Positions 28,429 to 54,243 of a stretch of DNA of 64,000 nt are shown piece by piece. A model generated the notes under the pieces. The model was given only the letters and a program-made list of their open reading frames with translations. It was not told the DNA's origin and ran no database searches. A program made the position numbers and the translations under genes. Location of the stretch: IMG/VR virus record IMGVR_UViG_3300023174_000045, positions 161,081-225,080 of that record; one strand, 5' to 3'. The number at the start of each line of letters is the position of its first letter. Within the stretch, counting starts at the first letter, position 1.

Positions 28429-28952
28429 ATTGCTATAAAAAATTACCTTGTGACAACTACAACAAAATCAATCAAGAAATACTCAAATACGTGCAGTTGG
28501 TTCTTGATGTTGACAATGCCACTGTATTCTGGAATCCTGTTCCTGTGGTAGACTTTGTCAGGGCCACACCATTGTTGCAAACCTGGCTTCGAGAACAAAA
28601 ACTACAGATCAAATCATTGGCAGTGACCATTGGAATCAATCAAAATTGTTGTGGGCCACATCTAGATACTCCTCCTGCAAGATTCAAACTCAGTTGGCCA
28701 ATACAGAACTGTGCTACCACATTCAACAGATTTTTTCAAACAAAAAATTCCAATGGCCAAACACATGTAAATCATTTGGGTGGCACAAGTTACTTGAACT
28801 CAAATGAGTTGACAGAAATTGATCGAATGAGAGTGGATTCACCTGCGCTGATTGATGCACAACAACCGCATGATGTGTGGTTTGAGACTGATTCGAAGTT
28901 TCCAAGACTGGGCTTGCAATGCCATTTAATGAAAGAACCTGAATATCTATGA
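28425..28952 (+). CDS. Cupin / 2OG-Fe(II) oxygenase-like protein
   Basis: PHLD, LSWPIQNC, PALID...PHDV, RLGLQ. Confidence 0.55.
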   Translation: MNCYKKLPCDNYNKINQEILKYVQLVLDVDNATVFWNPVPVVDFVRATPLLQTWLREQKLQIKSLAVTIGINQNCCGPHLDTPPARFKLSWPIQNCATTFNRFFQTKNSNGQTHVNHLGGTSYLNSNELTEIDRMRVDSPALIDAQQPHDVWFETDSKFPRLGLQCHLMKEPEYL

Positions 28953-29923
28953 CATTTTTAGTAACCGGCGGCCTAGGCCTTATTGGGCACAACGTAGTAC
29001 AACGTCTGCAAGCACGTGATGAGAAAGTGGTTATATTAGATACAAAAACCACGTATCACGATTTCATTCCTCAAGACGAACTTGACTATTTGATGACGGA
29101 ACGACAGAAAAAAATTGCTCCAGACACCAAGATTGAGTGCTTTGATATTTCAAACTTTTGGACCTGTGACTTGGCTGTGCTTAATCATAAGCCAAAAGTA
29201 ATCATTCACTGTGCCAGCTATCCCCGGCAAAAAGCCGTGAACCATAAGCCAACTGAGGCTGCCGATGTCATGATCAAAGGCCTGGTCAACATGCTTGAGA
29301 GTGCCAAAAAGCACGGCATTGAAAGATTTGTGTACATCAGTAGCAGCATGGTGTACGGAGACTTTGAAGATGATGTACTGGAAGATGACCCATGCCATCC
29401 CAAAGGACAGTATGGAATATTGAAATTATGTGGAGAAGAACTTGTAAAAGATTATGCTCGTCGTTGTGGCTTTGAGTATGTTATCATTCGTCCCAGTGCT
29501 GTTTATGGGCCACTTGACGTGGCGGATCGAGTGATCGCAAAATTCATGCTCACAGCAATGCGCAGCGGAGTGCTCCGAGTTAATGGAGCAAACGAAACCT
29601 TGGACTTTACCTACGTGGATGATGCCGCAGATGGCATTGTTGCTGCCGCAACACGTATCATGTGCCGCAACATGACATTCAACATCACCAAGTCGCACAG
29701 TGTGAGTCTACTGGAGGCCGCAGAAATGATTGTGAAAATTGTGGGCCGAGGCAGCATTGAGGTGCAGGACCGAGATGAGGACTTTCCCAGTCGCGGTGCA
29801 TTGAATATCGACCGTGCCCGAACTATCTTGAGTTTTGACCCCAAGGTAGATGTTGAACAAGGATTCCAAAAGTATTATGAGTGGCTTGACAATTCCATTT
29901 ACTGGAATCCGAAAACAGTATAA
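28949..29923 (+). CDS. NAD-dependent epimerase/dehydratase (NDP-sugar)
   Basis: TGGLGLIG, SSSMVYG, YGILK, DFTYVDD. Confidence 0.93.
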   Translation: MTFLVTGGLGLIGHNVVQRLQARDEKVVILDTKTTYHDFIPQDELDYLMTERQKKIAPDTKIECFDISNFWTCDLAVLNHKPKVIIHCASYPRQKAVNHKPTEAADVMIKGLVNMLESAKKHGIERFVYISSSMVYGDFEDDVLEDDPCHPKGQYGILKLCGEELVKDYARRCGFEYVIIRPSAVYGPLDVADRVIAKFMLTAMRSGVLRVNGANETLDFTYVDDAADGIVAAATRIMCRNMTFNITKSHSVSLLEAAEMIVKIVGRGSIEVQDRDEDFPSRGALNIDRARTILSFDPKVDVEQGFQKYYEWLDNSIYWNPKTV

Positions 29924-30965
29924 CAATCTCCGCACTGAGATCTTGGATGCAACAGATACAGTGTTGCGTTCAGGAACTCTCATGAGTGGCAACTACACCT
30001 ACGAGTTTGAGGATTGGCTGGCTAGACGCAATCACCAACCCTATGCTGTGACCTGCCACTCAGGCACACAGGCCTTGGAGATCATTGCTGAATGGTATAT
30101 GTTGCAGTCAGGACGTCCTGATATTCCCACTGTAGCTGTGCCCACACTGACTTATCCTGCCACACTCAACGCATTTGTACGAGCAGGCTGGAACTTGCAC
30201 ATTGTGGACACTGACAGATATGGTGCGATGGACTTGAGCCGCCTTGAGCACAACACAGACATTCAAGCCATATGCGGAGTGGGTCTGTACGGTCAATCTG
30301 TGCAGAATATGACACAGAGTTTATGGGCATTGACTCATCCCATCATTGAAGATGGCGCACAACATTGGCTCAGTAATGACTGTCAACGTGTGGGTGACTG
30401 TGCCATCAGTTTCGATCCCACAAAAAATCTAGCCAACTATAGCAATGGTGGTGCTGTGATCACTGCCAATCGTGACCTGATGGAATTTGCTAGAAACTGG
30501 ATCAGCAATGGCAAACATACAAAACATGCTGAATCAGGCACCAACAGCAGAATGAGTGAAACGGATTGTGCGCAGATGTTGGTAAAAACTCGCTACATTG
30601 ATCAATGGCAACAACGTAGAAGTACTATTGCTCAACACTGGATGGAGATGCTAAAGCACAAGCCTTGGATCACTTGTTTAATTGACGACAGCAACTTCAA
30701 TACGCACTGTTTCCACAAGTTTGTGATACATGTGGACAATCGAGATATCTTGCAACGCAACCTTGCCTTGCGTGGTATTGAGACCAAAGTACACTACCCA
30801 ACACCCATGCACGAGTTACCAGCATACCAGCACTATCCGTGTCCAGACTTGCTCAGTGCCGGCAGCAGCCTGGCACGTAGATGTCTAAGCCTGCCTATCT
30901 ATCCTGAACTAACAGACCTGGAAGTTGAGTATGTTATTGATTCGGTGTTAGAGATCGTTTCATAA
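29877..30965 (+). CDS. DegT/DnrJ/EryC1/StrS sugar aminotransferase
   Basis: SGTQAL, IEDGAQ, SFDPTKNL, LSLPIYP. Confidence 0.92.
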   Translation: MSGLTIPFTGIRKQYNNLRTEILDATDTVLRSGTLMSGNYTYEFEDWLARRNHQPYAVTCHSGTQALEIIAEWYMLQSGRPDIPTVAVPTLTYPATLNAFVRAGWNLHIVDTDRYGAMDLSRLEHNTDIQAICGVGLYGQSVQNMTQSLWALTHPIIEDGAQHWLSNDCQRVGDCAISFDPTKNLANYSNGGAVITANRDLMEFARNWISNGKHTKHAESGTNSRMSETDCAQMLVKTRYIDQWQQRRSTIAQHWMEMLKHKPWITCLIDDSNFNTHCFHKFVIHVDNRDILQRNLALRGIETKVHYPTPMHELPAYQHYPCPDLLSAGSSLARRCLSLPIYPELTDLEVEYVIDSVLEIVS

Positions 30966-33531
30966 ACGCATAAGTGGCCAACCAGGACCACTCATAACTC
31001 TTTTGTAGTTCTTTGGGATCGCCCTCAACTGAGTCATAGTACTCCACAGCATCCTCTGCACCTTTGCGACTCCAAGCGCCATCAGTATGATCCACACCAA
31101 GCCAAGTTCTAAGTCTGTGTTCGTTTTCTACGTCTGGAGCACTGGCCTTGAGTTTGAGTACTTCACGGAATGCAGTGCGCCAACACATCCAGTCTGATTC
31201 ATGATAGTTGGCGGTGCCAGAAATAATAGGTACAACTTCATGAGGTTGATCCAGTGTAAAGTCCAGGCCCGTTCCGGTATTCTCTAACACCAGTTGTTTG
31301 TTGTAAGCAATCATGGCCTGATGCCCATACACCAATCCGTTCACAGGATTGTGTGCGTGAAATATGTAATGTTTGGCCTGTTGCATACGATCAGGTTGCC
31401 AACGCCAGTCAAACTTGAAGTCAATGGTTAACTTGGCAAACACAGCAAAGAACCAAGGTGTGGTGCTGGCTTGGGCGGCTGCGTGATATGCTGCCACACG
31501 CCCGTTAATGCCGTCTACTCTGTGCAAATGGTTTGTATGGTTTGTTCCTAAGTTGACAATTCGATTTTCCAACAGCATCCAGTTGTCTTCAGCATTTATT
31601 TCACCGTTGCTGATGAACACAATGTCCAAGGGCGGATCTTTTAGTACACGTTGTGTTTTATCTATGTACGGGTAGTCATACAACTGTGTACGAATGTAAG
31701 GCACAGCCACACGTGGCACCACAACTGTGCCAGCACCGCTACTGACAGGCACAATGGCTTTGGTTTCTTTGCGCCACAGTGGCACAGTCACAAGATTGCC
31801 AGGCACGTAATCGTGATTGGTAAATGTAGCAAGTGGCCCTGTCCATTCAGTGTTCTTTACAGCATCAACTTGACTGTCTCTGTCATGCACAATAACAGGC
31901 ATGGGTCTGCGTGGTACACTGACATCAACAAAGTTTACATCTGACCACTCCAGTAGTTCTTTCTTTTCTGCTCTCACAGCAAATGTAGGCACATGCATGT
32001 AGAAAGTGTCACCAAACTTTTGATCGTTGGATTGGAACACATGCAACATGGTGGCTTGCCACTGTTCGGGATGCCAGGAGAAGTCAAAGTTGGTATAGTC
32101 ACAAATGCTGGAGCACACCCAAACAAACTCATGTTGATTGCCTATGCTTTTGGCCAGGCGTATCAGTGTGTCTCGGTAGTTGTCAAAATAACGCACTGTG
32201 CGAATGGTGTTGGCAATTTTACCAGCTGAGCCACACAAGTGATCAATTTCAAATATCACGGCAGACTTGGCATCTGTGGTGATGCGTATTTGATCCACAA
32301 ACTTGACTTCTGTTGCCCCTGGTACTGTGTACTGCGGGCCACCAGTGCGTTGATGCTGTGTGCCAAACTGATACGTAAATGGCGGATCAGTATCGTCGGG
32401 GTGCCAGGTCCAATCAAAGGTCCCAGTGTCCACACCGTCGGGCACAGTCCATGCATCATCCTTGGATGTTTTTGTCCCACGAGGCCAAACAACATACTTG
32501 ACTTCTACCGCACCAGGCACAGTGTATCGGGCACCACCTGTGCGTTGCCATTGTGTGCCAAATTGATATTGGTAAGGAGGATCTCCAGGATCAGGACACC
32601 AACTGTGATCCACACCTTCAACGCCATCGGGCACTGACCAATTGGCCATGGTGGGTAGTAGTTGCGCTCGTGGCCAGTTCACATACTTGCGTTCTGTGGC
32701 TCCTGGCACATGGTATTCTACTGTGGGCATGACTTCTGCTGGCCACCACTGATTACCAAACACATAAATGTAAGGTGGATCGCCAGGATCGGGGCACCAA
32801 CTGCGATCAAAATCAAACGCACAGTCGGCCACTGAGTGCCAACAGTCTTGAGTCGGTAGCAGTCTTGCTCGAGGATGCGTGATATACTTGCGTTCTACAG
32901 CGCCCGGTGTATGATATTCCATGGTGGGCATGACTTCAGGATTCCACCACTGATTACCAAACACATAGATGTAGGGTGGGTCTTTGGGATGCGGCCGCCA
33001 ACTGTAGTCCCACTCACAATCTGTTTTGCTGTGCCAGTGTTTGTCACGTTTGGGCAATAATTTTGCACCGGGGCTGTTGATGTATTTGGTATCAGCGGCA
33101 CCTAGCACACGATACACGGGTCCTCCTAGTTCATGCCACTGAGTGGCAAATTGATAGATATAAGGAGGGTCAACAGGATCTGGATGCCAACTGGTATCCC
33201 AGGTATCTAGTCCTGGCGGTATGGTCCAAGACTCAGCGTCAGAGCGTCGTTGTATTGTTGGAGTGGTATGATAGTTTGTGTCTACATAGCCCTCACGCGG
33301 TACAAGATACACACCAGAATCTTTTTGCCATTGGCTGGGCCATGCATGCCGTTGATCGGCTTGCCATGGCAGCGGTTCAAAAAGCCAGTCCCATGCATCA
33401 AGGTCCGCTAAGTAGTGTATCCACCAGAAATATCTAGTGCGACTCAACTTCTGTGCATGCTCAATGCTGTCAGCCCGACGCTCATGCGCAAATTGGCCTG
33501 GCTTCTTACCTGAATAAAATACGTCAAACAT
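30934..33531 (-). CDS. Large repeat protein with C-terminal glycosyltransferase-like domain
   Basis: Five WxPxxxDPPY repeats; C-terminus resembles 51091-52017. Confidence 0.75.
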   Translation of the reverse strand: MFDVFYSGKKPGQFAHERRADSIEHAQKLSRTRYFWWIHYLADLDAWDWLFEPLPWQADQRHAWPSQWQKDSGVYLVPREGYVDTNYHTTPTIQRRSDAESWTIPPGLDTWDTSWHPDPVDPPYIYQFATQWHELGGPVYRVLGAADTKYINSPGAKLLPKRDKHWHSKTDCEWDYSWRPHPKDPPYIYVFGNQWWNPEVMPTMEYHTPGAVERKYITHPRARLLPTQDCWHSVADCAFDFDRSWCPDPGDPPYIYVFGNQWWPAEVMPTVEYHVPGATERKYVNWPRAQLLPTMANWSVPDGVEGVDHSWCPDPGDPPYQYQFGTQWQRTGGARYTVPGAVEVKYVVWPRGTKTSKDDAWTVPDGVDTGTFDWTWHPDDTDPPFTYQFGTQHQRTGGPQYTVPGATEVKFVDQIRITTDAKSAVIFEIDHLCGSAGKIANTIRTVRYFDNYRDTLIRLAKSIGNQHEFVWVCSSICDYTNFDFSWHPEQWQATMLHVFQSNDQKFGDTFYMHVPTFAVRAEKKELLEWSDVNFVDVSVPRRPMPVIVHDRDSQVDAVKNTEWTGPLATFTNHDYVPGNLVTVPLWRKETKAIVPVSSGAGTVVVPRVAVPYIRTQLYDYPYIDKTQRVLKDPPLDIVFISNGEINAEDNWMLLENRIVNLGTNHTNHLHRVDGINGRVAAYHAAAQASTTPWFFAVFAKLTIDFKFDWRWQPDRMQQAKHYIFHAHNPVNGLVYGHQAMIAYNKQLVLENTGTGLDFTLDQPHEVVPIISGTANYHESDWMCWRTAFREVLKLKASAPDVENEHRLRTWLGVDHTDGAWSRKGAEDAVEYYDSVEGDPKELQKSYEWSWLATYAFMKRSLTPNQ

Positions 33532-34699
33532 GATTAGAATAGATGAAATTTACAACAACACATTTTGGCCTTGGATTGAGCGTCATCATCCAGGTGTTAG
33601 AATGTTTTTTTGCGAACCATTTGGTAGAACTGATCCTGATAGTCTAGTTAATTATGGCAGTGATGATATACCTGAACACAATTATACACTATTATGGGAT
33701 CAAGAACCTATTCATTTGAACATACATACTGCCACATTTGAATGTCTTATTGCGCAAAATATTGATTTGCACGATTGGTGCAATGGATTAAACAATAAAG
33801 ACAAGGCAGCAATTAAAGCTGGATACACACAAAAATCAACTGGGGATTGTACTGTAGGCAGTATTATTACCAGTGAGCGAGACAGTGATACTGTAGATGC
33901 TGTATGTAAAAAATACCACTGGAAAAGTTATTATTATTTTTTTCACGGCTGGGCTGCACTGGATTGGTACCGTGGGTATGATCGAACTTTCTTGATCACC
34001 CCATGGCAACAAAGAACTATCTCAAAAACATTTCTAGCACCCAATCGCATTGTGGCAGGAGAACGTCAACACAGATTGGAAATGCTGTACTGGATATTCC
34101 AACTGGGCATGACCAACAATCATATATCATGCCCTAGTGTGTGTCCTGCAGAAAACATATCAATCATGGATGCTGTGCAGCCACTTAAAACAAAGTATTC
34201 TGATATAGAAACAGTGTTTGCACAACAGCCATTGCCACTGAATTTTAAAAATGAAGTTGGCCATCCCATGCAGTCATGTTGGCTCGATTTATTTGATCAA
34301 TCGGCTGAAAGTCTGTTATACTTGGTTACTGAAACAGTGGCCACGGGACGACGACATCACTTGACTGAAAAAACTTTTAAGCCTATAGCAATGGGCATGC
34401 CGTTTGTAATTGTGGGCACACAAGGCAGTTTAAAGTACCTGCGCAGTTATGGATTTCGAACGTTTGGTGACTTGTGGGATGAAAGTTATGACGACGAACC
34501 TGATGATTCTCGACGCATAGAAAAAATTGCCCATGTATTGAAACAGTTAGAAGGATTAGAAGAACATCGCCAAGACATATTTGAATCTGCACATGAAATA
34601 ATTGAGCACAATTGGAATCATTTTTATCATGGTGGATTTGAAGCGATATTGTGGCAAGAACTAAAGGACATGTTAAATGAGTTTAAATTTAGTCGTTGA
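33530..34699 (+). CDS. Glycosyltransferase-like protein (TET...TEKTFKP family)
   Basis: LVTET, LTEKTFKPI, GFRTF, DESYD. Confidence 0.6.
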   Translation: MIRIDEIYNNTFWPWIERHHPGVRMFFCEPFGRTDPDSLVNYGSDDIPEHNYTLLWDQEPIHLNIHTATFECLIAQNIDLHDWCNGLNNKDKAAIKAGYTQKSTGDCTVGSIITSERDSDTVDAVCKKYHWKSYYYFFHGWAALDWYRGYDRTFLITPWQQRTISKTFLAPNRIVAGERQHRLEMLYWIFQLGMTNNHISCPSVCPAENISIMDAVQPLKTKYSDIETVFAQQPLPLNFKNEVGHPMQSCWLDLFDQSAESLLYLVTETVATGRRHHLTEKTFKPIAMGMPFVIVGTQGSLKYLRSYGFRTFGDLWDESYDDEPDDSRRIEKIAHVLKQLEGLEEHRQDIFESAHEIIEHNWNHFYHGGFEAILWQELKDMLNEFKFSR

Positions 34700-35858
34700 C
34701 CAACTCATTCGAGGTAGAATATATCCTGCTTTGGCACGCCACCAGGCTGTGCCATACACACAAGGTTGGAGAGAATTTGGCCAACACTGGCCACATACCA
34801 TTCCTTTGAGACTGCAAGAATACTGTGACCATCACAGTGTTGAACTAAACATCACGGACATTAACTCTGAATGGCCCACTGATGCATTTTATCCCGTGGG
34901 CTTGAGTTTCTTTGATTTTGGCATTGATTACTTTGAACTAATGCCTGAGCGCATACGAACAGAATTGTTTTCTGACAATGTGCGTGTGTTGTTTTACTAT
35001 CACGAAGGTGATAATCCTTGGCATATCAAAACTAGACTAGACGAACTATGCACCAAACATAATTTACACAACGACTGTTACAAATTTGTCAGTGCAAATA
35101 CTGCGGCCCGAGATGTTCCAGGATTTGTTTACTTTACAGATTTTGAATTGTGGTATTATCAACGCAACCGGGCAAGCTCCCCACTGAAAATACACCACGA
35201 GCCAAGAGAGCGTGACTTCACTGTGCTCAACAGACTGCACAAATCATGGCGTGCCTTGGCCATGGCCGATTTAAAAAGTCTTGACTTACTGAACAATTCA
35301 TACTGGAGTTATTGTGAATCAGGTGAGTTTGACGATGCAGAGTGTCCCATTGAAATTGATGCCATTGCCGGACTGCGCACTGCCACTGAAGAGTTTTTGC
35401 GTACAGCACCGTACGTCAGCGATGAACTGGATCATGACCAGCGCAATGACCACAGCACACTTGTGCCCAAGTATCATGTCAACAGTTATTGCAACATTGT
35501 GATAGAAACACATTTTGATGCTGATCAAAGTGGCGGAACCTTTCTAACTGAAAAAACATTCAAGCCCATCAAACATGGACAAATGTTTTTTATAGCGGGT
35601 CCAGCAGGCAGTTTGCAGGTGCTACGTGACTTGGGCTATCGTGTATTTGATTCAGTGTTGGACAACAGTTACGATCTGGAACCTGACCATACACAACGTT
35701 GGATGGCGTTGACTCGAGCAGTTTATTTTGCTCAATCAGAACTGCCTGCATTGTTTGAACAGGCCAGAGCTGACATAGAACACAACCAACAGTTATTTCA
35801 AGCCATCAAGACTGAACGTTTAAATACCCTAATCAAGGACATCAATGAATCCCATTAA
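34677..35858 (+). CDS. Glycosyltransferase-like protein (same family)
   Basis: IVIET, LTEKTFKPI, DNSYD. Confidence 0.6.
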   Translation: MSLNLVVDQLIRGRIYPALARHQAVPYTQGWREFGQHWPHTIPLRLQEYCDHHSVELNITDINSEWPTDAFYPVGLSFFDFGIDYFELMPERIRTELFSDNVRVLFYYHEGDNPWHIKTRLDELCTKHNLHNDCYKFVSANTAARDVPGFVYFTDFELWYYQRNRASSPLKIHHEPRERDFTVLNRLHKSWRALAMADLKSLDLLNNSYWSYCESGEFDDAECPIEIDAIAGLRTATEEFLRTAPYVSDELDHDQRNDHSTLVPKYHVNSYCNIVIETHFDADQSGGTFLTEKTFKPIKHGQMFFIAGPAGSLQVLRDLGYRVFDSVLDNSYDLEPDHTQRWMALTRAVYFAQSELPALFEQARADIEHNQQLFQAIKTERLNTLIKDINESH

Positions 35859-36882: not shown

Positions 36883-37503
36883 ACGTTTGATACCATACAA
36901 CAAAGAAATTTCTTTGACCAGGCCTTCGTCAAACTGTTGATCAGTGTCATAGATCCAGTGGGCCCGAGTTTCAAATCCAGCCTTGCCGAACAATCCTTGC
37001 CACATTTTATTGCCCAATATACTGTAGTGATTGGGATTGTTTTCGTGCATCCAGGTGCGTTGATTGTCAGGTGCTGGCACTTCAATAAACGCTTGGCCGC
37101 CAGGTTTCAACACACGATGGAATTCGTACAATGTAAACAGCGGATAAGGACTGTGTTCCAAAGCATGCCTACACCAAATAAAATCCACAGAGCCATCTGC
37201 CCAAGGCAAGTCACTCATGTCAGCATGTTTTATTTTTAAACCAGCCAACTCGCATGCAGCCACATCGTCAGCACTGAGTGTGACTCCCGTGATATCTGAG
37301 TATCCCAATTTGTGTGCAGCCTGCGCAAACAGTCCTGCACCACATCCTATGTCAATGATACCAGCATCGGACTGCAGATCAAACTCAGGTAAAAACCTTT
37401 GAGCAAACTCAGGAATAATTTGATCGTGAAACCCGCCCGGCACTTCACTGTAAACAGTGCTCAATGCCTGTTGTTCATAGCGTTGAAATTTTTCAAAATT
37501 CAT
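36877..37503 (-). CDS. Class I SAM methyltransferase
   Basis: IDIGCGAG, HALEH, RVLKPGG. Confidence 0.9.
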   Translation of the reverse strand: MNFEKFQRYEQQALSTVYSEVPGGFHDQIIPEFAQRFLPEFDLQSDAGIIDIGCGAGLFAQAAHKLGYSDITGVTLSADDVAACELAGLKIKHADMSDLPWADGSVDFIWCRHALEHSPYPLFTLYEFHRVLKPGGQAFIEVPAPDNQRTWMHENNPNHYSILGNKMWQGLFGKAGFETRAHWIYDTDQQFDEGLVKEISLLYGIKRL

Positions 37504-46211: not shown

Positions 46212-47535
46212 ACCATTCTGCTAGGTTGGGAAATGCTCTAGCAAAGATTTTGTCTCTGCGCTGATCATATTGTGTGTAAAATTGCTTGAAGTCATTCAAC
46301 AACTTGGGCATTTCAAATGCTTCACTGTGTGGAGTTTTAACAATATCTAAATAATCAATCAGGCGTTGTACATGGTTGACTTCGTGTTCGTGCAAGCAGG
46401 GATTTTCACTATTGTGGAACAACCATGCTTGCAGTTGTAATCGATAACGATTGCGCAATTCTTCTGGTAATACCAATGCACTTTGAAAACTAGGAAAGCG
46501 TAATATATTTAATGTAAAGTTGATTTGGTCACGACCATAGCGTTGTTTCAAATACAACATCATGTTGAGATGATCCACAAGACTGTCCAGGCACAATGCG
46601 TTAATGGTACACATGATGTGCAAGGCCTTTACTAACTTGCCCTCCAACAAATACAACACGTTCTGCAGCCATTGGTCATAGTTCAAGCCGTCACGTATGT
46701 ACTCTGCTTGCTTAAATGTTGCTTCCATTGATGTATATACTTCCACGTCAGGCAAGGTGCGAATGGCGGCACCAAACTCCATCATCTTGGGCAGTTCAAT
46801 ACCCAGGTTTGAATTGATGGCCAGACGTGTTGTGCTACGACCTTGGTTCTGTTTAAACCAATCAATCAGTTTCCAGGTGTAGCCCGACATCAAGGGCTCA
46901 CCGCCGGTTATTCGGAGTTCTTGGAGAGTGCGGTGGAGGTCTCGTTCCCACCAGTCGAAGAAGGCTTCCACGTACGGATTAGTTTCACCGAATTTATAAA
47001 GTTGAGCACTATCGTGAGTGTGAGTAAAGTGGTTCCTACCATCGCTAACCAACCCGTTGTAGGGTCCATGCTTGCGTATATCATTGACCCAAGTGGAACT
47101 AAAAGCAGGATTGCAATAAGAACAAGCAAATTGACAAGTGCGATCGAAACTGATTTCCAGTGTTCTAAGATTAACGTCATCTTGGACGGGAGTGTTGACT
47201 GCTTCATGTAAGGCCTCTATGGGATAAATTTTGCTTTTGTACACACGGTCACTCACAGCATTGGTGTCCATGTCTTCAATCTTCCAGCAGTACTCGCAAC
47301 CAGCAGGGCGTTTGCCCATGACCATGTCACGACGATCTGCTTTCTTTTGGTCAGTATTGTGCAGCAGCCTAGAGTTGTTATTGACTTTATCAACGTCAAT
47401 CAAATGAGCTGGCGGGTGATGGCAACTTGTGGTCTGCCCACTTCCTAACCAAATGGTAGCATTGTACCATTTCGCTGCACAAAAACTTGAGGACACAGGA
47501 TCTAATACCTGTTGTTTAAATTCTAAATCATTCAT
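46192..47535 (-). CDS. Radical SAM enzyme
   Basis: CAAKW..SCHHP..CEYCW; CQFACSYC; GGEPL. Confidence 0.9.
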   Translation of the reverse strand: MNDLEFKQQVLDPVSSSFCAAKWYNATIWLGSGQTTSCHHPPAHLIDVDKVNNNSRLLHNTDQKKADRRDMVMGKRPAGCEYCWKIEDMDTNAVSDRVYKSKIYPIEALHEAVNTPVQDDVNLRTLEISFDRTCQFACSYCNPAFSSTWVNDIRKHGPYNGLVSDGRNHFTHTHDSAQLYKFGETNPYVEAFFDWWERDLHRTLQELRITGGEPLMSGYTWKLIDWFKQNQGRSTTRLAINSNLGIELPKMMEFGAAIRTLPDVEVYTSMEATFKQAEYIRDGLNYDQWLQNVLYLLEGKLVKALHIMCTINALCLDSLVDHLNMMLYLKQRYGRDQINFTLNILRFPSFQSALVLPEELRNRYRLQLQAWLFHNSENPCLHEHEVNHVQRLIDYLDIVKTPHSEAFEMPKLLNDFKQFYTQYDQRRDKIFARAFPNLAEWYDSINN

Positions 47536-48619
47536 TTATATATTGGGTTAACCGTTCGGGGAGTTCTGCACGTTCACGACGATTGTGTTCGCGAAGTTGT
47601 TGATAATTGTATTTACAAACAGATCTAGCTGCCTCCAAGAAACTGGCAGCACCATTATAACATATATCAGCAACAACGTCAACAATTCTATTGGCACGAT
47701 CGGTGGGGTCATCTATTAAATCAAATGTTTCATCAATCAGGTGCCCGAATGTTTGAAAACCTGCACTACGTAAATCTCTATAGTATCCTCGATTGGCTGC
47801 CACAACAAATGGATGACACATGATTATAGGCTTCCAAATCTTTTCTGTACGAAACGTGTAAGGATAATCAAATATGGTTTCTGTTACAACACTAAAACAG
47901 GTGTCTACATAAGCACGTGGATTTACAATAGCATCGCCCCAGGTGTTACCAAACAAATGATGTTTTACAAATCCTGTTGTCACAGTGCTCATGTTGGGCA
48001 CTGCACGAGCAATTTCATATTGAGGGGGCAACAATCTAATAGGTTCATCAGGTTGAGTGTGTAATGCACTACTCCAAGTCATCTCCACATGATCGCCAAG
48101 ATTGGTCCATAGCGCACGATCTAACAATCCCTGTTTACGCATGGCATCTATTAGATACTTGCGGTGTGGACGCAGCCGTCCATTTAAAAACAAAAAATCA
48201 TAGAGCTTGTGTTGTGTTTGTACATTGTGCGTGGCGGCATCAAGATTTTCCAGATACTCTACAATGTTAGAAAAGTAACCGTCTGTTTTGCAGTAGTTCC
48301 ACCCAGGTTCTAAGTCTCCGGATGTTAGTAATCCGATGCGTCCGTCACGAACATATTCTGTTATCATCAGTCTACGAAGTTGTAGCAGTATGGTTTCACT
48401 GCCTTCGGCAGGATTGGAAAATACAATATGACCTGGATGTTTGGTGGCCCACTCTGTTATGGGATACCAGTTTTCTTTTAGTACAACTCTGCCTACAATG
48501 TATATCGCATCAGGATCTAGTTCCGTGGGCCACTGCCAAAAGCTGGCATCGGCATATGGTTTGAGCAAGTCCCATACTTCGGCCCACTCGTCTACAATGA
48601 TTTTATGTTGTCCTAGCAT
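47528..48619 (-). CDS. Glycosyltransferase-like protein (TET...TEK family)
   Basis: VVTET, RTEKIWKPI, GFQTF, DETFD. Confidence 0.6.
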   Translation of the reverse strand: MLGQHKIIVDEWAEVWDLLKPYADASFWQWPTELDPDAIYIVGRVVLKENWYPITEWATKHPGHIVFSNPAEGSETILLQLRRLMITEYVRDGRIGLLTSGDLEPGWNYCKTDGYFSNIVEYLENLDAATHNVQTQHKLYDFLFLNGRLRPHRKYLIDAMRKQGLLDRALWTNLGDHVEMTWSSALHTQPDEPIRLLPPQYEIARAVPNMSTVTTGFVKHHLFGNTWGDAIVNPRAYVDTCFSVVTETIFDYPYTFRTEKIWKPIIMCHPFVVAANRGYYRDLRSAGFQTFGHLIDETFDLIDDPTDRANRIVDVVADICYNGAASFLEAARSVCKYNYQQLREHNRRERAELPERLTQYINE

Positions 48620-49719
48620 TAGATGTTCTGATTTAAAAAATTTAAAAAACGTTCAGGAAATTCTTGTTGAATTTTGATCGCTGTATCAGCAAAATGTTGC
48701 TGGTTGTATATGCATATATCACGTGATTCTTTAAGAAATTGATCAAGATCTGATTTACATAAATCTTCAACGACTTCGGCTATTCGACTTAGTCGCTGTT
48801 GCTTATCTTCGATCAGATCAAAACTTTCATCTATCAAGTGTTCGAATGTTTTGAACCCTAGATTACGAATATCTTTGTAGTACCCGGCGTTAGCCACTGC
48901 AATCCAGGGATGCCCTATTGCAATAGGCTTCCAGATCTTTTCAGTCCTAAAACTGTAAGAATCCGTGACAGTTTCTGTTACCAACGAAAAATACGTGTCA
49001 ATATAAGGTTCTGCAACTAGTTGTCCATCACCCCAGGTGCCATTGAACAAGTGACGTTTAACTTCCAAAAACTTGTCGTAGCCAGATAGCGCACTGGCAT
49101 CTAAATTAGATTGATACTCCGATAGTTCATATTTTTTGTCTAGTAAATGTATATCAGCCATGTTGCGATCGAGACAGCTCCATAAACTTTGATCTATTAG
49201 ATTGTTGTTTTTAAATCGTTCTATTAGGTACTTGCGGTGCCATCGATACATGCCATTCAAAAACAAAAATTTATAAGGCTTACTGGTTTTGTTATATATT
49301 TCGTTGACTCTAGCGCACTGCGGTTTGTTTTTTTCATTTTTATAGATTTCTACCAAAAAAGTTTCGTGGGCTAGACATGCATACTCATGCCCTAGTTCAG
49401 CACCAGCAATAATCAGAAATTGTTTTTGTTTAGCAATAGCATCTATTCCAGTTTCTAACAAATCACAAGCCAGTGTTATTGATCCTTCAAAAGGATGACT
49501 ATAAACTACTTTTATACGTTTTGTTTCAATTAGCTCTTGTATATAATCAAAGTTTTTGTAGAATAATGCTCGACCAAAAATATAAATTCCATCCTCAATC
49601 ACCTGGTTCACCTGGTCAGAAAAATCAACTGAGCTAGAATAAACCATTGAGTTAAATAGCTCAGGAATTCCGCACCATGGGTCTACAATGATTTTATGAT
49701 TGCCGAGCATGGTATGCAC
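48619..49719 (-). CDS. Glycosyltransferase-like protein, tandem paralogue of previous
   Basis: MLGxHKIIVD start, FLFLNG, TEKIWKPI. Confidence 0.6.
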   Translation of the reverse strand: MHTMLGNHKIIVDPWCGIPELFNSMVYSSSVDFSDQVNQVIEDGIYIFGRALFYKNFDYIQELIETKRIKVVYSHPFEGSITLACDLLETGIDAIAKQKQFLIIAGAELGHEYACLAHETFLVEIYKNEKNKPQCARVNEIYNKTSKPYKFLFLNGMYRWHRKYLIERFKNNNLIDQSLWSCLDRNMADIHLLDKKYELSEYQSNLDASALSGYDKFLEVKRHLFNGTWGDGQLVAEPYIDTYFSLVTETVTDSYSFRTEKIWKPIAIGHPWIAVANAGYYKDIRNLGFKTFEHLIDESFDLIEDKQQRLSRIAEVVEDLCKSDLDQFLKESRDICIYNQQHFADTAIKIQQEFPERFLNFLNQNI

Positions 49720-51091
49720 ACTCCTCCCACCATGACCTCATCTCTGGAAATGTTTTCAAAAAGTCTGTGTCACGACGACGATCATGTTCGCTGAAGAAAC
49801 GATAGAAGTCTGCTTTTGCCACACTGTGATCTGCCAACTGTGCTGACCGCATCCAGGCAATGTCGCGATCCAGTCTGTGTAGTTCATAGTCTTTGAATCC
49901 TTTGAATGGTGCCTCTTCTGTTTCAATTTGTCGTACCATCCATGCCCACAACCATTCCAGCTTCTCTGCGTAGCTTTCGGGCAAGATCTGTAGACTTTGC
50001 CAAGCAGGCTCACGCAACACAGGCGTGTCAAACCACACACGTTGATATGTGTTGCTGTATACCTTACGCAGTCCTAGTATGCCAGCAAACAGTTTGTCCA
50101 AACTGGTCACACTCAAATTGTTCATTGTGATGATAAATGTGAGACTGCTGTAATTGGGTACTTCTGTAAGGAATTGATTTACTCGGTCCCATAGCAGTTC
50201 AAAGTCTAACCCGTGCCGCATGTATTCAGCTTGTTCGCCCCAGCCATCTAGGCTCACATACTGCATGAAATGTTCTATGCGACCATCACACAGTTGTTTG
50301 ACGTACGCTAGATACTTTTGCCACGACTTTTCATCTACACTAAAGTTGCTTGTGACATTTAAGTGTAGTCGGGGACTGGGGTTGGCCAACACATAATCAA
50401 ACACACGATAGGTATTTTTGTCCAACAGTGGCTCTCCACCAGTCATTCTAAAGTGTTCTAGGTGTGGATACAGAGTTGGCCACCAGGACCAGAAGGCGTC
50501 AATATAAGGGTTGGACTCTCGAACTGGAATTGGTCTACGTTGGCCCACAAAGTGCTCAGGAGCATTGTGTGGACGACTAGTAGGGTAAGCACCCAAGCGC
50601 GAAATTTCATCTGCCCATGAGCTTGAGAACTGAGGGCTACAATAGCTACACTTGAGATTGCAAGCGTGATTAAAATTAACTTCAACATAACTGGGGATAA
50701 CATCTTCCTCTCCTGTGCTGTTCTTTATTGATTCAAAATCCACCGCGGCCCAAGGCTCGCCTGACCGATAATGACGATCACTGAGTTTACCTTCATTTTC
50801 CATGTTCCAACAGTAAGAACATTCTGTGGGTTTCTCTCCTGCCAACATCATCCGACGTTGAGTTTTTTTGTGAGCAGTGTTGTGTAATGCGCTGGGGTTG
50901 ACTTTGATTGCATCTGCATCTATAGCATGCAGGGGTGGATGATAACATGAGTTGTTGAGTCCAGTGGGCAAGTGAAAGCTGACTTGTTTCCATTTGGCCA
51001 AACAAAGTGCAGGTCCTAATTGTGCTTTCATCTGTTCAGCAGAGTTCAAGAACTTGCTTTTGGTGCCTATGGACTCATCACCTTTGTTCAT
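49694..51091 (-). CDS. Radical SAM enzyme
   Basis: CLAKW..SCYHP..CSYCW; CNLKCSYC; GGEPL. Confidence 0.9.
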   Translation of the reverse strand: MNKGDESIGTKSKFLNSAEQMKAQLGPALCLAKWKQVSFHLPTGLNNSCYHPPLHAIDADAIKVNPSALHNTAHKKTQRRMMLAGEKPTECSYCWNMENEGKLSDRHYRSGEPWAAVDFESIKNSTGEEDVIPSYVEVNFNHACNLKCSYCSPQFSSSWADEISRLGAYPTSRPHNAPEHFVGQRRPIPVRESNPYIDAFWSWWPTLYPHLEHFRMTGGEPLLDKNTYRVFDYVLANPSPRLHLNVTSNFSVDEKSWQKYLAYVKQLCDGRIEHFMQYVSLDGWGEQAEYMRHGLDFELLWDRVNQFLTEVPNYSSLTFIITMNNLSVTSLDKLFAGILGLRKVYSNTYQRVWFDTPVLREPAWQSLQILPESYAEKLEWLWAWMVRQIETEEAPFKGFKDYELHRLDRDIAWMRSAQLADHSVAKADFYRFFSEHDRRRDTDFLKTFPEMRSWWEECAYHARQS

Positions 51092-52017
51092 TACCAGCCT
51101 TCTTGTTCACGGATAACATCAATCTCTCTCACCATGACACCACGATTTGACCAGTTGCTACGATAGTGATGTTTGAAGAACTTGCTTTGTTCACCTTCAA
51201 ATATGGCCATGGGCAGGTCCAATTGTGAATACAAATCATCTGCCACACGTCCGCCTAACAATCGTGGGTCTGAATCTTTCACACTATTCCAAAGTTCTGC
51301 AAGTGCATCAAAGTCTTGAACTTGTTTGTGATCCCAGTTTGTGAGCATGGTCATGTATGTGCCTTGTCTGGCACCGGCCATGGCCCACTGACCGTTGTTG
51401 ACGTCTGCACCAATGTTGTGCCATATGGTCAAATTATCTAAATTTCTTTTGTGTACTTGTTCTTGAAATTCTTCTACACTGGGTTTGGCACCTTTGTTCA
51501 GGCACATTTTTACACCTTCACGGAATCCGGCACGCCATGCTTGGAAAGCGGATCCATTGGGGTATGTGGTCGAATAACAGTCGTACATGGGCCAGTACAA
51601 GGGATCAAAACAAAACTCTACTTCAGTTTCCACACGGCCATCGGTGGCTTCGTGTGTGCGCATGTTGTTGACAAATTCACGTGTCCACGAACTTAAACCG
51701 CCATTGCCATACATCAGGCCATTGATGTGATTTTTTGCTCGCCAACGAAACACCGCTTGTTCCCAGTCTGGTGTCACAAATGTCAGCGTTTGGTTAAAGA
51801 AGGCAGAATCAGGAATGTTGTCACCGTCAATGAGTATAAAACGCTCAGTGGTGCTGACAGCGGCAGCGGCTTTGTGTGCGGCGTCACTGCCCTTTACGCC
51901 GTCTACTCTTGTGGCCCATGGTACCATGTTCTTGATCTTTACCCAAAATTCTTCTTTTTCAGGTTCATCATAACTTAGGTATACACAGTCTAGGTCTGCA
52001 ATGTCAATTTGATTCAT
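51091..52017 (-). CDS. GT-A-like glycosyltransferase
   Basis: [36 protein letters not shown]. Confidence 0.65.
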
Positions 52018-52339
52018 ATGTTTTTTTACTCCATTTGGTATGAGGTCGGCTCTCAGCAACGATTACAGCGACATTGTCAGGATGACAAGGGGATCCAGAG
52101 TTGCCAGGAACCAATTTTGTTGTAGTTTTCCAAGTTACTTCTACTAGTTGCCCGTCACGCACACGCACGTTGGAAGGACTGCGGGCAAAAGTTGCTTGAT
52201 CAATTTCAATGTATGTACCAGGCTGATCCTCCATGCTGTAGAATAATGGGAAGCCATCAGCGTCATGATACAAACGATAAAATGGAGGCGGTGGGTCAAG
52301 CACGGCCTGAAACATTTTGATTAATTCTTCAGGTGTCAT
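52004..52339 (-). CDS. Hypothetical protein
   Basis: [10 protein letters not shown]...FYRLYHD. Confidence 0.7.
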
Positions 52340-53106
52340 GCTCGCCACTCTTTGACATTGTAATGAAATGCACCTGTTTGTGGCACAGTTTGTATGCGTA
52401 GTCGCAAGTCTTGATATTCCCACACCAGTTCATCCAACCAGTGTTCAGTATGCGTTCCTGCTATGTGGCGTTTCATATGCACAATCTTTGGGTATGTGCT
52501 GAATGGCATTGTCACACGTTCAGGTCCTATGATTTCAGCAGCCATGGCATACACCAAATCTGTAGATGGAACTTCATCTGGAAACTTTATGAGTTTTTTA
52601 AACTCTGCCCAGTTGGCAAATATATCACGCACCCAGCCAAAGAATTCTTTGGCAGTTTCACTGCGCCGCCAATATGTGACAGCATTGTACACGTCAGGCA
52701 AGTTGTTGGCATCAAACACTCGTCGATAGTTTCTTGCTGTGCTGACATTATCCTGCCAATCTCTACAGCCTGTTGATATTACTACATCACGATGTCTAAA
52801 CTGAGTCCACCAATGGTCGATGGGACTCACTATCAACATGTCTGCTTCCAGTTTGATGGTTTCACGAAATGGTGTGAGTCTAAACAGTTGTGCATCATTG
52901 GCAAATGGGTTGGCATTAGGCACAATCTGTCTGTAGTGATCATACAAGGGTTCAGTGTAAGCACGGTCTGTGACTAGACAAATACGTGCTGACGGATCCC
53001 AGTAGCGTATGGTCTTGGCCAAGGTGCGGGCGCAATCCTGGTAATCAATAGTGTCGCTGTTGACCGCAACAATTAAGTAACCTTGTTCATCAATGGGCTG
53101 CAACAA
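52336..53106 (-). CDS. GT8-like nucleotide-diphospho-sugar transferase
   Basis: [16 protein letters not shown]. Confidence 0.7.
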
Positions 53107-53941
53107 TGGCCTCCAAATGCTTTTTACCCATAGCGTGAAAATCCATGCCCCGCCAACTCATAGTTTTAAGCTGACCATCGGCATTGATGTATTCAACTTC
53201 ATAATGATCCTGCTCAATCCAAGTCAATCGGGGCTCAGGCATGATATTGACCATGCTGCCATATATCTCATGCACTGATTGTTCAGTCCCTGCTACCAGG
53301 CCTAGGGCAATGCTCAAAGCATGGTCATTGCGATAGTTACTTTGGTGGATGCCATACAAGTCTCGATAGTGTTGCCAATTGTTGCGGATCATTTGCATGC
53401 TATCAAATATGTATTGACTGATGTTGCCACGGCGAAACATCATTACAGTGGCCCACCACATGGGCATGTGATGCGCACCAAATGTGTCAAGGTTGGTCAA
53501 GTTGGCTACGTCAAGTGAATCCCGAAAGGCTGCAAACTGTTGCGGTATTTTTAATACATCCAACAAGGCATCACTGGCCACAACATAGTCAGCGTCCAGC
53601 ACCAGGGTTTGATCAAAAGGCGACAGTTCATAAGCATTGATTCGTCCAGCATTGTGCCAGGTTACTGTGGCGTTGTAGTCAGCAAAATGTCTTGACCCGC
53701 CAGCGTCCGGTGCAGTTACAATGATGTGCTCAAATTTGTACTGGGCGGCCACTTCTGGATTGTCTGTAACCACAGCCACAGGCAATTCTAAGTGGCGACG
53801 GATGTTTTTTGCACTCCATGCTGCCATAGCAATGTAATCTGTGGCCTCGTTGTTGAAGGCAAAGATCACGACACCTTGGCTCAGCGTTTTTTGCTTAGTT
53901 CGTCCCATTCCACTTTCCATGCGTTCATTTGTTCTTGCCAA
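53090..53941 (-). CDS. GT8-like nucleotide-diphospho-sugar transferase (start uncertain, probably nearer 53890)
   Basis: SPFDQTLVLDADY, YRNDHALSIA, HAMGK. Confidence 0.72.
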   Translation of the reverse strand: MARTNERMESGMGRTKQKTLSQGVVIFAFNNEATDYIAMAAWSAKNIRRHLELPVAVVTDNPEVAAQYKFEHIIVTAPDAGGSRHFADYNATVTWHNAGRINAYELSPFDQTLVLDADYVVASDALLDVLKIPQQFAAFRDSLDVANLTNLDTFGAHHMPMWWATVMMFRRGNISQYIFDSMQMIRNNWQHYRDLYGIHQSNYRNDHALSIALGLVAGTEQSVHEIYGSMVNIMPEPRLTWIEQDHYEVEYINADGQLKTMSWRGMDFHAMGKKHLEAIVAAH

Positions 53942-54189
53942 CGTTCGTGTGCTAGAGCAAATAGTTCTGTCACAGTAATTTTTACCGGAGTTTCATACAA
54001 GTCAAGTAAGACAACATCCTTGTCTTGTGCGCAGGCCAGCAGTGTGGTCAGCAAGTCAGGGCCTGCCCTCCACATACCACCAGCATAGGCAAACACCATA
54101 CGTGCTTCGTACTTTTCTTTTAGCACCCGTCTAGCGGCTGCATGATCAAATCGGGCTCGTGCGTGAGCAACCAAGGCTTCAGTATCCAT
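53881..54189 (-). CDS. Hypothetical protein, first gene of the modification operon
   Basis: Promoter TTTACT-17-TATAAT, ATG 5 nt after the -10 box. Confidence 0.75.
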   Translation of the reverse strand: MDTEALVAHARARFDHAAARRVLKEKYEARMVFAYAGGMWRAGPDLLTTLLACAQDKDVVLLDLYETPVKITVTELFALAHERWQEQMNAWKVEWDELSKKR

Positions 54190-54241: not shown

Positions 54242-54243
54242 GG

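Follow-up and report, generated by a model that had tools for sequence, protein, structure and literature searches.

A conserved, fibre-linked gene cluster rich in radical SAM proteins in freshwater jumbo phages and its likely role in glycan synthesis and tailoring

What use does a phage have for five radical S-adenosylmethionine (SAM) proteins encoded next to its fibre genes, in the company of sugar-modifying enzymes and glycosyltransferase-like proteins? The locus that raises this question occupies positions 28949–54189 (~25 kb) of a window of 64,000 nucleotides (nt), by which we mean the whole stretch of DNA analysed here; it forms the last 64 kb (positions 161,081 to 225,080) of the 225,080-bp IMG/VR viral contig IMGVR_UViG_3300023174_000045. 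CheckV places this contig at ~65% completeness, and related contigs reach 345–364 kb. Near-identical DNA is present in lake, river and freshwater metagenomes from at least 10 studies, and none of the sequencing runs that hold it is on record as RNA. This occurrence, together with a virion protein of Rak2-like phages encoded in the window, identifies the source, on sequence grounds, as a freshwater Rak2-like jumbo phage. All cluster genes are open under translation table 11, and no alternative code was assumed. We compared the encoded proteins with Pfam, NCBIfam, PHROGs and PDB sequences (phmmer and profile searches) and used AlphaFold2 (AF2) models, Foldseek, VIA-align and hhalign. These analyses make it likely that the cluster synthesizes and tailors a glycan, and they bring the chance that fibres or the virion are the acceptor of that glycan close to even.

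The radical SAM proteins set this locus apart. A preliminary description, made from the sequence alone, had reported five such proteins whose auxiliary Cys domain lies N-terminal to the CxxxCxxC motif, and this observation stands. All five pass the NCBIfam model NF033640 (N_Twi_rSAM, 'twitch domain-containing radical SAM protein'; curated cut-off 170 bits), scoring 265–405 bits and covering model positions 1–3 to 387–398. They are, with lengths in amino acids (aa):

42005–43282, minus strand: N-terminal twitch (N-twitch) radical SAM protein, 425 aa; NF033640 265 bits
43279–44517, minus strand: N-twitch radical SAM protein, 412 aa; NF033640 328 bits
44514–46211, minus strand: N-twitch radical SAM protein, 565 aa; NF033640 405 bits over residues 166–563
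46192–47535, minus strand: N-twitch radical SAM protein, 447 aa; NF033640 287 bits
49694–51091, minus strand: N-twitch radical SAM protein, 465 aa (rSAM465), coupled to the GT-A-like gene upstream; NF033640 317 bits

Their alignment contains four invariant Cys residues within the first ~80 residues (C9, C27, C76 and C79) and, after these twitch Cys, the invariant C133, C137 and C140 of the CxxxCxxC motif and a GGEP motif. The Pfam Radical_SAM matches are weak (23–29 bits against a cut-off of 29.5), and the domain order is the same: in the 412-aa protein, SPASM (residues 9–80) is N-terminal of Radical_SAM (129–280), and in the 565-aa protein SPASM lies at residues 170–235 (1e-10), with an N-terminal piece of this protein aligning to the C-terminal SPASM parts of the StsB, WgkB and GeoRSP models. 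By sequence, then, an auxiliary-cluster (twitch or half-SPASM) Cys domain precedes the radical SAM core. The permuted order had been presented as unusual; it is real, but rather than being an unrecognised oddity it is what defines the curated NF033640 family. NF033640 has a curated name without an assigned reaction, and the five proteins of this cluster are full-length members of it; a literature search on NF033640 or on N-terminal twitch/SPASM enzymes returned nothing relevant. The 565-aa protein has an additional, low-GC (0.37) N-terminal extension of 165 aa, found in 21/75 relatives; its orthologues in two of the related loci (L001 and L005) are ~420 aa long.

Conservation was counted in the 47 related viral loci whose 10-kb flanks are complete. 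All five radical SAM proteins occur in 47/47 of these, at median identities of 69–76% (73% for the 425-aa protein and 76% for rSAM465), and the five paralogs are only 19–30% identical to one another. Low mutual identity together with separate conservation implies that they carry out five distinct, old and separately retained functions. The 412-aa protein has >7500 metagenomic relatives, and a relative of the 447-aa protein is present on 482 IMG/VR contigs. Of 14 control (reference) genomes, none contains an NF033640 member above cut-off, so that five in one cluster is far beyond chance; 3/301 sampled genomes of one bacterial phylum contain one, and one of these three is a metagenome-assembled genome (MAG) with phage contigs. 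The 225-kb contig encodes eight members in total, three of them outside the cluster. Five conserved NF033640 paralogs in one operon, and eight in 225 kb, have not been described previously.

Further copies of the N-twitch, amidinotransferase and TEK genes (the latter two families are described below) are located at contig coordinates 4100–7350, 43330–47230, 55225–56586, 140254–141297 and 153126–156183. They comprise the three N-twitch radical SAM genes, at least two TEK-like genes and two amidinotransferase paralogs. A TEK-like gene lies directly upstream of a radical SAM gene at contig 153.1–156.2 kb, and a fibre paralog adjoins a radical SAM gene at contig 4.0–5.1 kb.

The core of the cluster, consisting of the fibre gene, the GT-A-like genes, the five radical SAM genes and a carbamoyltransferase gene, is syntenic across the related freshwater jumbo-phage loci. 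An epimerase, a DegT aminotransferase, a carbamoyltransferase and three methyltransferases had also been named in the preliminary description, and Pfam matches bear them out; the amidinotransferase it named is borne out by phmmer against PDB sequences, though Pfam and NCBIfam miss it. Counts are of the 47 loci:

28949–29923, plus strand: short-chain dehydrogenase/reductase (SDR) resembling nucleoside-diphosphate (NDP)-sugar epimerases and 4,6-dehydratases, 324 aa; PF01370, 1e-42
29850–30965, plus strand: DegT/PseC-like pyridoxal-phosphate (PLP) sugar aminotransferase, 371 aa; PF01041, 2e-52
35845–36882, plus strand: amidinotransferase of the AGAT/StrB1/SxtG/HsvA superfamily, 345 aa; phmmer against PDB
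36877–37503, minus strand: class I SAM methyltransferase, accessory, 208 aa; PF08241, 8e-21; 3/47 loci
37493–38290, minus strand: FkbM-family methyltransferase, accessory, 265 aa; PF05050, 2e-20; 5/47 loci
38287–39774, minus strand: carbamoyltransferase of the NodU/CmcH/TobZ type, 495 aa; PF16861, 1e-48, and PF02543, 1e-37; 46/47 loci
40206–40892, minus strand: class I SAM methyltransferase, accessory, 228 aa; PF13847, 1e-19; 1/47 loci

The best NCBIfam model for the SDR protein is dTDP-glucose 4,6-dehydratase (5e-32 over the full length, 111 bits against a cut-off of 365), and that for the aminotransferase is PseC (1e-37, 130 bits against 423); models of 4-amino-4,6-dideoxyhexose transaminases also match the latter, all below their equivalog cut-offs. 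Both proteins thus fall within their superfamilies but not at equivalog level, and a 4-amino-4,6-dideoxyhexose would be their predicted product. An orthologue of the aminotransferase with 57% identity is found in locus L005, which lies in a MAG labelled Haliscomenobacter. The carbamoyltransferase matches Carbam_trans_N and Carbam_trans_C with 130 and 165 bits (cut-offs 24 and 27); against the NodU model it scores 141 bits (5e-41), far from the equivalog cut-off of 1000 bits, and it is therefore not NodU itself. The FkbM-family protein scores 93 bits against TIGR01444, above the cut-off of 37.7.

The amidinotransferase has no Pfam match even at E 10 and no NCBIfam match, whereas phmmer relates it to L-arginine:glycine amidinotransferase (AGAT; 5e-16), StrB1 (4e-11), SxtG (3e-10) and HsvA (1e-11) in the PDB; we therefore regard it as a divergent member of this superfamily. 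The alignment runs in three stretches over residues 3–345, namely an N-terminal, a His and a C-terminal Cys segment. In the comparison with AGAT, GGISCCTQDIRRRG pairs with GGGFHCWTCDVRRRG in the C-terminal Cys stretch, and GHGDA pairs with HIDA; by analogy with AGAT we take these to hold the catalytic Cys near the C terminus and the His of the triad. Its orthologues have a median identity of 89%, and two more paralogs are encoded elsewhere in the genome. No cluster gene reaches the NCBIfam equivalog cut-off of any known pathway enzyme.

About eight genes had been called glycosyltransferase-like. Five of these now have support from protein folds, weak for the four GT-B-like ones and confident for the one of GT-A fold, whereas one of the others is a degenerate GT-A paralog and two are candidates with a DxD-type motif. 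The GT-A-like set is as follows:

51091–52059, minus strand: core protein of GT-A fold with a DGD motif, 322 aa; AF2, Foldseek and VIA-align; 47/47 loci, median identity 77%
30934–33531, minus strand: protein with repeats, a middle region and a C-terminal GT-A-like domain, 865 aa; repeats and paralogy
52336–53106, minus strand: possible GT-A protein with a DxD-like motif, 256 aa; phrog_1903, 5e-11; 45/47 loci
53090–53941, minus strand: possible GT-A protein (GT8/NleB-like) with an LDADY motif, 283 aa; 44/47 loci

The 322-aa protein, whose likely start is the ATG at codon 15, belongs to an unnamed and almost entirely viral family of 1523 clusters at 50% identity and has no match in Pfam, NCBIfam or PHROGs. 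Its AF2 model, built with 78 diverse relatives, has a predicted local distance difference test (pLDDT) score of 93.6, and residues 16–170 adopt a GT-A Rossmann-like fold (VIA-align Z up to 9.4); all of the best 50 VIA-align matches are glycosyltransferases or nucleotidyltransferases. In Foldseek, the best PDB match is PBCV-1 A64R (1.6e-4), which we take to be a chlorovirus capsid-glycosylating transferase, and ArnC, RmlT, TarP and SunS match as well; among its viral structural neighbours are annotated glycosyltransferases, that of mycobacteriophage Che8 being one. In the DGD motif, D78 and D80 are nearly invariant among the 78 family members. The family profile found only ankyrin-like and GmaR noise among PDB sequences (E ≥0.05). 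A complex prediction for rSAM465 and the 322-aa protein scored 0.00 and carries no weight on whether the two bind.

In the 865-aa protein, the last 300 residues form a paralog of the 322-aa protein (29% identity) that lacks the DxD. Five tandem repeats of ~65 aa begin at residues 121, 184, 251, 317 and 382 (region ~100–430) and follow the motif SWxPDPxDPPYxYxFGxQW...GG..Y.VPGA...KY; searches of Pfam, NCBIfam, PHROGs and PDB sequences returned no match to the protein. The 256- and 283-aa proteins form a paralogous pair without a Pfam or NCBIfam match, and the 283-aa member has none in PHROGs either. Their joint profile found NleB alone in the PDB, around the LDAD region and weakly (E 0.4), and hhalign places their DAD on the DGD of the 322-aa family with E 0.023 and a probability of 2%.

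The second set comprises four paralogs, mutually 21–38% identical, with a common C-terminal motif (...TET...TEK(F/W)KPI...G...G...LR..GF..F...DE.YD), which we call TEK paralogs:

33530–34699, plus strand: TEK paralog 1, putative GT-B-type glycosyltransferase, 389 aa; paralogy
34677–35858, plus strand: TEK paralog 2, putative GT-B-type glycosyltransferase, 393 aa; paralogy
47528–48619, minus strand: TEK paralog 3, putative GT-B-type glycosyltransferase, 363 aa; AF2 model and VIA-align
48619–49719, minus strand: TEK paralog 4, putative GT-B-type glycosyltransferase, 366 aa; 38% identity to paralog 3

A TEK gene is present in 46/47 loci, and most relatives have one at the position of paralogs 3 and 4, not two. 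The family of paralog 1 comprises >4700 metagenomic proteins, all unnamed. Searches of Pfam (up to E 10), NCBIfam, PHROGs and PDB sequences, the last also with a profile, found no match to the paralogs, nor did tblastn of one of them against phages. The AF2 model of paralog 3 is poor (pLDDT 59), with an unreliable N-terminal half and a usable C-terminal half. Residues 135–362 align to the C-terminal domains of GT-B enzymes, best to Arabidopsis FUT11 (GT10; Z 8.4), then to NGT (7.9), OGT (7.7), PimA (7.6), T4 beta-glucosyltransferase (7.4) and T4 alpha-glucosyltransferase (6.4). The best 50 VIA-align matches, with Z in a middling range, are mostly GT-B glycosyltransferases, and a small number are TIR or receiver-type domains; the best Foldseek matches are SenB, GtfA and Helicobacter pylori alpha-1,3-fucosyltransferase (template-modelling score ~0.25). 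For paralogs 1, 2 and 4, the fold is extrapolated from paralog 3. Membership in GT10 was considered and rejected: against five bacterial GT10 proteins, hhalign gave E 0.26 and a probability of 0.2%, pairing only the ET..TEK of the family with the GT10 motif EN..YxTEK, and there is no PF00852 match. The TEK proteins are probably GT-B-type transferases with a GT10-like donor motif, as far as these models go, and not GT10 members.

How is this cluster tied to the fibre genes? The relevant elements at the junction are these:

53881–54189, minus strand: small conserved protein, the first gene past the hairpin and promoter-like site, 102 aa; 44/47 loci, no family match
54195–54240, minus strand: terminator-like hairpin and promoter-like site in the 54-nt gap (54190–54243) between the fibre gene and the first cluster gene
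54244–55194, minus strand: Thr-rich fibre-like protein, candidate glycosylation target, 316 aa; 24% Thr, 32% Ser+Thr; 42/47 loci
55214–57016, minus strand: virion fibre/tail-pin protein, 600 aa, 22% Ser+Thr; homologues in PA5oct, Atu_ph07, Phosso and other jumbo phages
57819–63962, minus strand: virion structural protein common to Rak2-like jumbo myoviruses, 2047 aa; tblastn to K64-1, Atu_ph07 and 121Q-like phages

Homologues of the 600-aa protein are annotated as virion structural protein or baseplate wedge/tail pin, and paralogs of it are encoded elsewhere in the same genome. From 54189 down to 36877, the minus-strand cluster genes overlap or abut, bar gaps of 94 and 97 nt that flank the accessory methyltransferase gene at 40206–40892. 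The plus-strand genes, first the epimerase and DegT genes, then TEK paralogs 1 and 2 with the amidinotransferase gene, overlap their minus-strand neighbours at their ends. The start codons of the divergent 865-aa gene (minus strand) and TEK paralog 1 (plus strand) overlap at 33530–33531, which therefore leaves no room for an intergenic promoter. The convergent gene pairs overlap at 30934–30965 and 36877–36882.

The hairpin (54240–54213) consists of an 8-bp GC-rich stem followed by a T-run, with a folding energy of -14 kcal/mol and z of -2.8. The promoter-like site, TTTACT-17-TATAAT, whose TATAAT occupies 54195–54200, ends 5 nt before the ATG of the 102-aa gene. Of 69 related loci, nearly all retain the hairpin, with both arms altered in sequence yet still paired, and the TATAAT/TACAAT box is retained as well. 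Hairpin, T-run and covariation together are the marks of an intrinsic terminator, and we regard termination here as putative. Conservation of both elements suggests that the cluster is probably transcribed on its own, perhaps as a near-leaderless mRNA, from the point where the fibre transcript ends, and not as a mere tail of the fibre operon. The tightly overlapped minus-strand operon directly downstream of the fibre genes that had been proposed thus holds for its overlaps and its adjacency, but it is broken by two gaps and separated from the fibre genes by the hairpin and promoter-like site. A general promoter class able to date the operon was rejected: a genome-wide scan for TTTAC-N16-20-TATAAT-like-N3-9-ATG/GTG returned 3 sites only. 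The gene at 28105 is preceded by a comparable TACAAT-5nt-ATG element; ~30 nt ahead of the 600-aa fibre gene, near 57040–57050, there is a T4-late-like TATAAATA.

A reduced version of the cluster is present in a cultured phage, Ralstonia phage RsoM2USA, where it occupies open reading frames (ORFs) 348–358 inside the structural gene block, all annotated as hypothetical. The order is a fibre-like ORF355, ORF353 (32% identical to the 283-aa protein), ORF352 (28% to the 256-aa protein), a small gene, ORF350 (40% to the 322-aa GT-A protein), ORF349 (34% to rSAM465) and ORF348, a second GT-A paralog. The epimerase-like ORF358 sits between the tail sheath gene ORF359 and ORF356, which encodes a structural protein, and ORF361, a homologue of the 2047-aa virion protein, lies upstream. 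ORF356, ORF359 and ORF361 have been confirmed in virions by mass spectrometry (PMC8504454). The RsoM2USA block differs from ours in having one radical SAM gene instead of five, with two more matches elsewhere in that genome, and the 29 kb examined contain no BLAST-detectable TEK paralog, amidinotransferase or carbamoyltransferase. Clustered N-twitch genes also occur in the KVP40-like Vibrio phages K566 and nt-1, as four tandem members interleaved with hypothetical proteins of 300–420 aa. Their radical SAM proteins are only 21–28% identical to those here, BLAST detects no homology between the interleaved genes and the TEK or GT-A genes, and the radical SAM genes are not beside annotated fibre genes within the stretch examined; as with the 114-aa gene of our cluster (see below), K566 has a 'PagP'-annotated gene near its radical SAM genes. 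A megablast search with 14 kb returned no match among cultured phages.

Taken together, the enzyme classes, folds, conservation, synteny and solubility documented here suggest the following scheme, for which we infer the order of reactions, the substrate and the fibre target. The SDR protein and the PseC/DegT-like aminotransferase would convert a host NDP-hexose to an NDP-4-amino-4,6-dideoxyhexose, as their nearest models suggest. The amidinotransferase, by the chemistry of its family, would turn an amine into a guanidino group at the expense of arginine, and the NodU/TobZ-type enzyme would O-carbamoylate the sugar. Up to three accessory methyltransferases may add methyl groups, in this phage particularly, and several GT-A-like and GT-B-like transferases may assemble the glycan. 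Each of the five N-twitch proteins could contribute one radical tailoring step on sugar residues, with epimerization, oxidation, deoxygenation and C–C or C–X bond formation as candidate reactions. The likeliest acceptors would be the Thr/Ser-rich fibre proteins encoded immediately upstream, and glycosylation of the virion could tune adsorption or shield the fibres. That some radical SAM and TEK copies elsewhere in the genome adjoin fibre paralogs supports a link to the virion. As a whole, a cytoplasmic phage system that builds or tailors an unusual oligosaccharide, most likely to glycosylate the Thr/Ser-rich fibres, is in our estimate about as probable as all other readings combined. The preliminary description had proposed an elaborate modified glycan for virion fibres, the host surface or DNA. 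The glycan fits all of our findings, and the target leans towards the virion, with the host surface less favoured and DNA unlikely; that interpretation was reasonable and is partly supported, yet it was broader than the present evidence allows.

Several points weigh against glycosylation of the fibres. Evidence for both the glycan and its acceptor is indirect. The terminator-like hairpin and promoter-like site appear to part the fibre gene from the cluster and leave co-expression unsupported. The GT-A fold is also that of nucleotidyltransferases, so the glycosyltransferase activity of the 322-aa protein is putative; that of the 256- and 283-aa proteins is unproven and hangs on a DxD motif; and the assignment of the TEK family is weak (pLDDT 59, Z ≤8.4, hhalign E 0.26). 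Twitch and SPASM radical SAM proteins often act on peptides, and soluble glycosyltransferases can also use lipid-linked acceptors supplied by the host. For similar tail-fibre-adjacent islands of glycosyltransferase and radical SAM genes, the pelagimyophage literature favours modification of the host O-antigen (PMC7029224).

This last interpretation is the foremost alternative: the modified sugars would be placed on host lipopolysaccharide, capsule or S-layer through the carrier, flippase and polymerase of the host, which would block superinfection or aid release. The promoter-like site of the cluster itself fits such a role, and so do the polysaccharide-type contexts of bacterial relatives. 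In one bacterial genome (G152), the radical SAM family occurs with a methyltransferase–GT2 fusion, a GT22-like membrane glycosyltransferase and GDSL proteins, and in another (G284) with a polysaccharide deacetylase, a GT11-like protein, a carbamoyltransferase and GDSL proteins, so that two of three bacterial loci have a carbohydrate context. Against it, none of 24 cluster proteins contains a transmembrane segment (the highest 19-residue Kyte–Doolittle mean is 1.50, and 1.52 across all proteins tested), and the cluster therefore has no Wzx-, Wzy- or WecA-like component; its 25 kb encode no membrane protein, initiating phosphoglycosyltransferase, flippase or polymerase. Even RsoM2USA, a distant phage, has the genes within or beside its structural module, and the core is kept in 47/47 loci, unlike typical host-specific O-antigen cassettes. 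We consider remodelling of the host surface rather improbable.

The third bacterial locus bears on a different alternative, in which the radical SAM proteins modify fibre or virion proteins directly, by epimerization, cross-links or hydroxyl-type chemistry, while the sugar enzymes act in parallel. On a Bacteroidota chromosome (G080; locus L012, C2:1208000-1227999), a divergent pair of N-twitch radical SAM genes is accompanied by four PhyH dioxygenases, a WelO5-like halogenase/hydroxylase, a methyltransferase and a GDSL protein, and an 842-aa fibre-like protein with Peptidase_S74 (endosialidase chaperone) and type IX secretion system (T9SS) sorting domains is encoded beside the pair. The gene content suggests a cluster for oxidative tailoring that adjoins the gene of a secreted fibre-like protein. 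SPASM and twitch enzymes are mostly peptide maturases, and maturases of sactipeptides and ranthipeptides are among the weak NCBIfam matches of the cluster proteins. Against this reading, BlsE is among those weak matches as well, and the twitch enzymes BtrN and BlsE act on sugars. The radical SAM genes in the two other bacterial loci and in phages adjoin glycosyltransferase-like and sugar-modifying genes, and we saw no precursor-peptide-like gene or recognition element of ribosomally synthesized and post-translationally modified peptides. Direct modification of protein is accordingly an unlikely role, in our judgement, for the five enzymes.

The enzyme classes themselves recall antibiotic biosynthesis, and the preliminary description had called the chemistry aminoglycoside-type. 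A StrB1-type amidinotransferase, a TobZ-type carbamoyltransferase, a DegT protein and twitch radical SAM proteins do match the classes of aminoglycoside pathways, and a cyanophage S-SCSM2R trio of DegT-like, radical SAM and inosamine-amidinotransferase genes has been termed 'antibiotic synthesis genes', its role being unclear (PMC12801897). A diffusible guanidino- or carbamoyl-amino-sugar acting on the host or its competitors could be the product. Yet what the cluster shares with aminoglycoside and nucleoside-antibiotic tailoring (StrB1, TobZ/NodU, BtrN and BlsE) is superfamilies, with no equivalog-level match and no membership in a characterized pathway, and the twitch domain of aminoglycoside-type enzymes is at the opposite end of the protein. 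We found no cyclitol synthase, exporter or resistance gene, the eight glycosyltransferase-like genes of the cluster far exceed the needs of such pathways, and its association with fibre and structural genes is constant. A small molecule of this kind is very unlikely.

Least probable of all is a sugar-based DNA base adduct that evades restriction: phage GT-B enzymes, such as the T4 glucosyltransferases among the TEK fold matches, glucosylate DNA, radical SAM, PLP and carbamoyl chemistry is known in base hypermodification and a ThyX gene lies just upstream, but ThyX makes ordinary dTMP, the 225 kb searched (~65% of the genome) contain no ThyA-type pyrimidine hydroxymethylase, eight transferases with NDP-4-amino-6-deoxyhexose enzymes suit a glycan and not a base adduct, and the RsoM2USA module lies within a structural block.

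Glycosylation of the virion, the reading that we prefer, has precedents of its kind. Mimivirus fibrils are glycosylated with virus-made 4-amino-4,6-dideoxy sugars, chlorovirus capsids are glycosylated by A64R, and virions of mycobacteriophages of the Che8 type are glycosylated as well. These systems resemble the cluster in their soluble virus-encoded GT-A enzymes, their position beside structural genes, a dehydratase and aminotransferase route to 4-amino-6-deoxy sugars and methyltransferases that include the FkbM type. They differ in that virion glycosylation is established for them and proposed here. To our knowledge, none of them includes a radical SAM protein, an amidinotransferase or a carbamoyltransferase. 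Tail-fibre-linked islands with glycosyltransferase and radical SAM genes have been noted, rather than explained, as a 'host recognition cluster' in pelagimyophages and cyanomyophages (PMC7029224). The likeness to these and to the cyanophage islands is one of gene classes as described there; those islands are hypervariable and belong to T4-like marine phages, whereas the core described here is syntenic in 47/47 freshwater jumbo-phage loci.

Three further cluster genes fall outside the scheme above:

39764–40108, minus strand: accessory protein, 114 aa, resembling the C-terminal third of the 'PagP'-annotated phrog_3600 (PHROG 5e-9); 1/47 loci
40987–42012, minus strand: conserved core protein, 341 aa; 47/47 loci, median identity 66%
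52004–52423, minus strand: small conserved protein, 139 aa, likely start codon 29; 46/47 loci, no family match

The 341-aa protein has no Pfam, NCBIfam, PHROG or PDB match, profile search included. A MAG labelled Haliscomenobacter sp. (G001) contains two long contigs (C1 and C3), each with a five-radical-SAM phage cluster; both are probably phage contigs binned into the MAG, and we do not take them as evidence of a host.

Elsewhere in the window, a tRNA array at 1430–10646 comprises 31 tRNA genes and a tmRNA (ARAGORN 'tmRNA*'; tag ANDEQFALAA). One of the tRNAs, at 3464–3542 (called tRNA-Pyl), has the anticodon CUA and would act as an amber suppressor. TAG is the rarest stop codon, ending 1/28 genes in and around the cluster and 21/235 genome ORFs of at least 100 aa. 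Auxiliary metabolic genes follow just past the array (11872–14312), encoding an alpha/beta hydrolase (11872–12777), a class IV (D-amino-acid/branched-chain) aminotransferase (12746–13615) and an AhpC/TSA peroxiredoxin (13728–14312). The phage also has a MoxR–VWA pair, namely a MoxR-type AAA ATPase (19385–20476) and a DUF2201 metallopeptidase-like/VWA protein (21401–22726).

Virus-encoded glycosylation is known as a kind, being established in giant viruses and some mycobacteriophages, and the N-terminal twitch family has been catalogued; none of those viruses is known to employ radical SAM chemistry for it. What is new is a large, conserved, fibre-linked and radical-SAM-rich glycan cluster in an abundant lineage of freshwater jumbo phages, found on hundreds of viral contigs and with thousands of metagenomic protein relatives from lakes and rivers. 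We propose, tentatively and with the odds against it, that NF033640 is a new class of carbohydrate-tailoring radical enzymes, five of which act in series, together with the GT-A and GT-B-like transferases, the amidinotransferase and the carbamoyltransferase of this lineage, to build a guanidino/carbamoyl glycan on tail fibres. If true, this chemistry would be without precedent in protein glycosylation, and fibre glycans would help to determine which hosts these abundant freshwater phages recognize. Cultured carriers of reduced versions, RsoM2USA and the KVP40-like Vibrio phages, make the question directly testable. Solving the cluster would assign a chemistry to NF033640 and probably reveal new guanidino, carbamoyl and radical-derived sugar modifications. 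It would also put to the test the idea that the receptor-binding organelles of jumbo phages are glycosylated by the phages themselves, a point that matters for host range and for how the marine 'host recognition clusters' are to be read.

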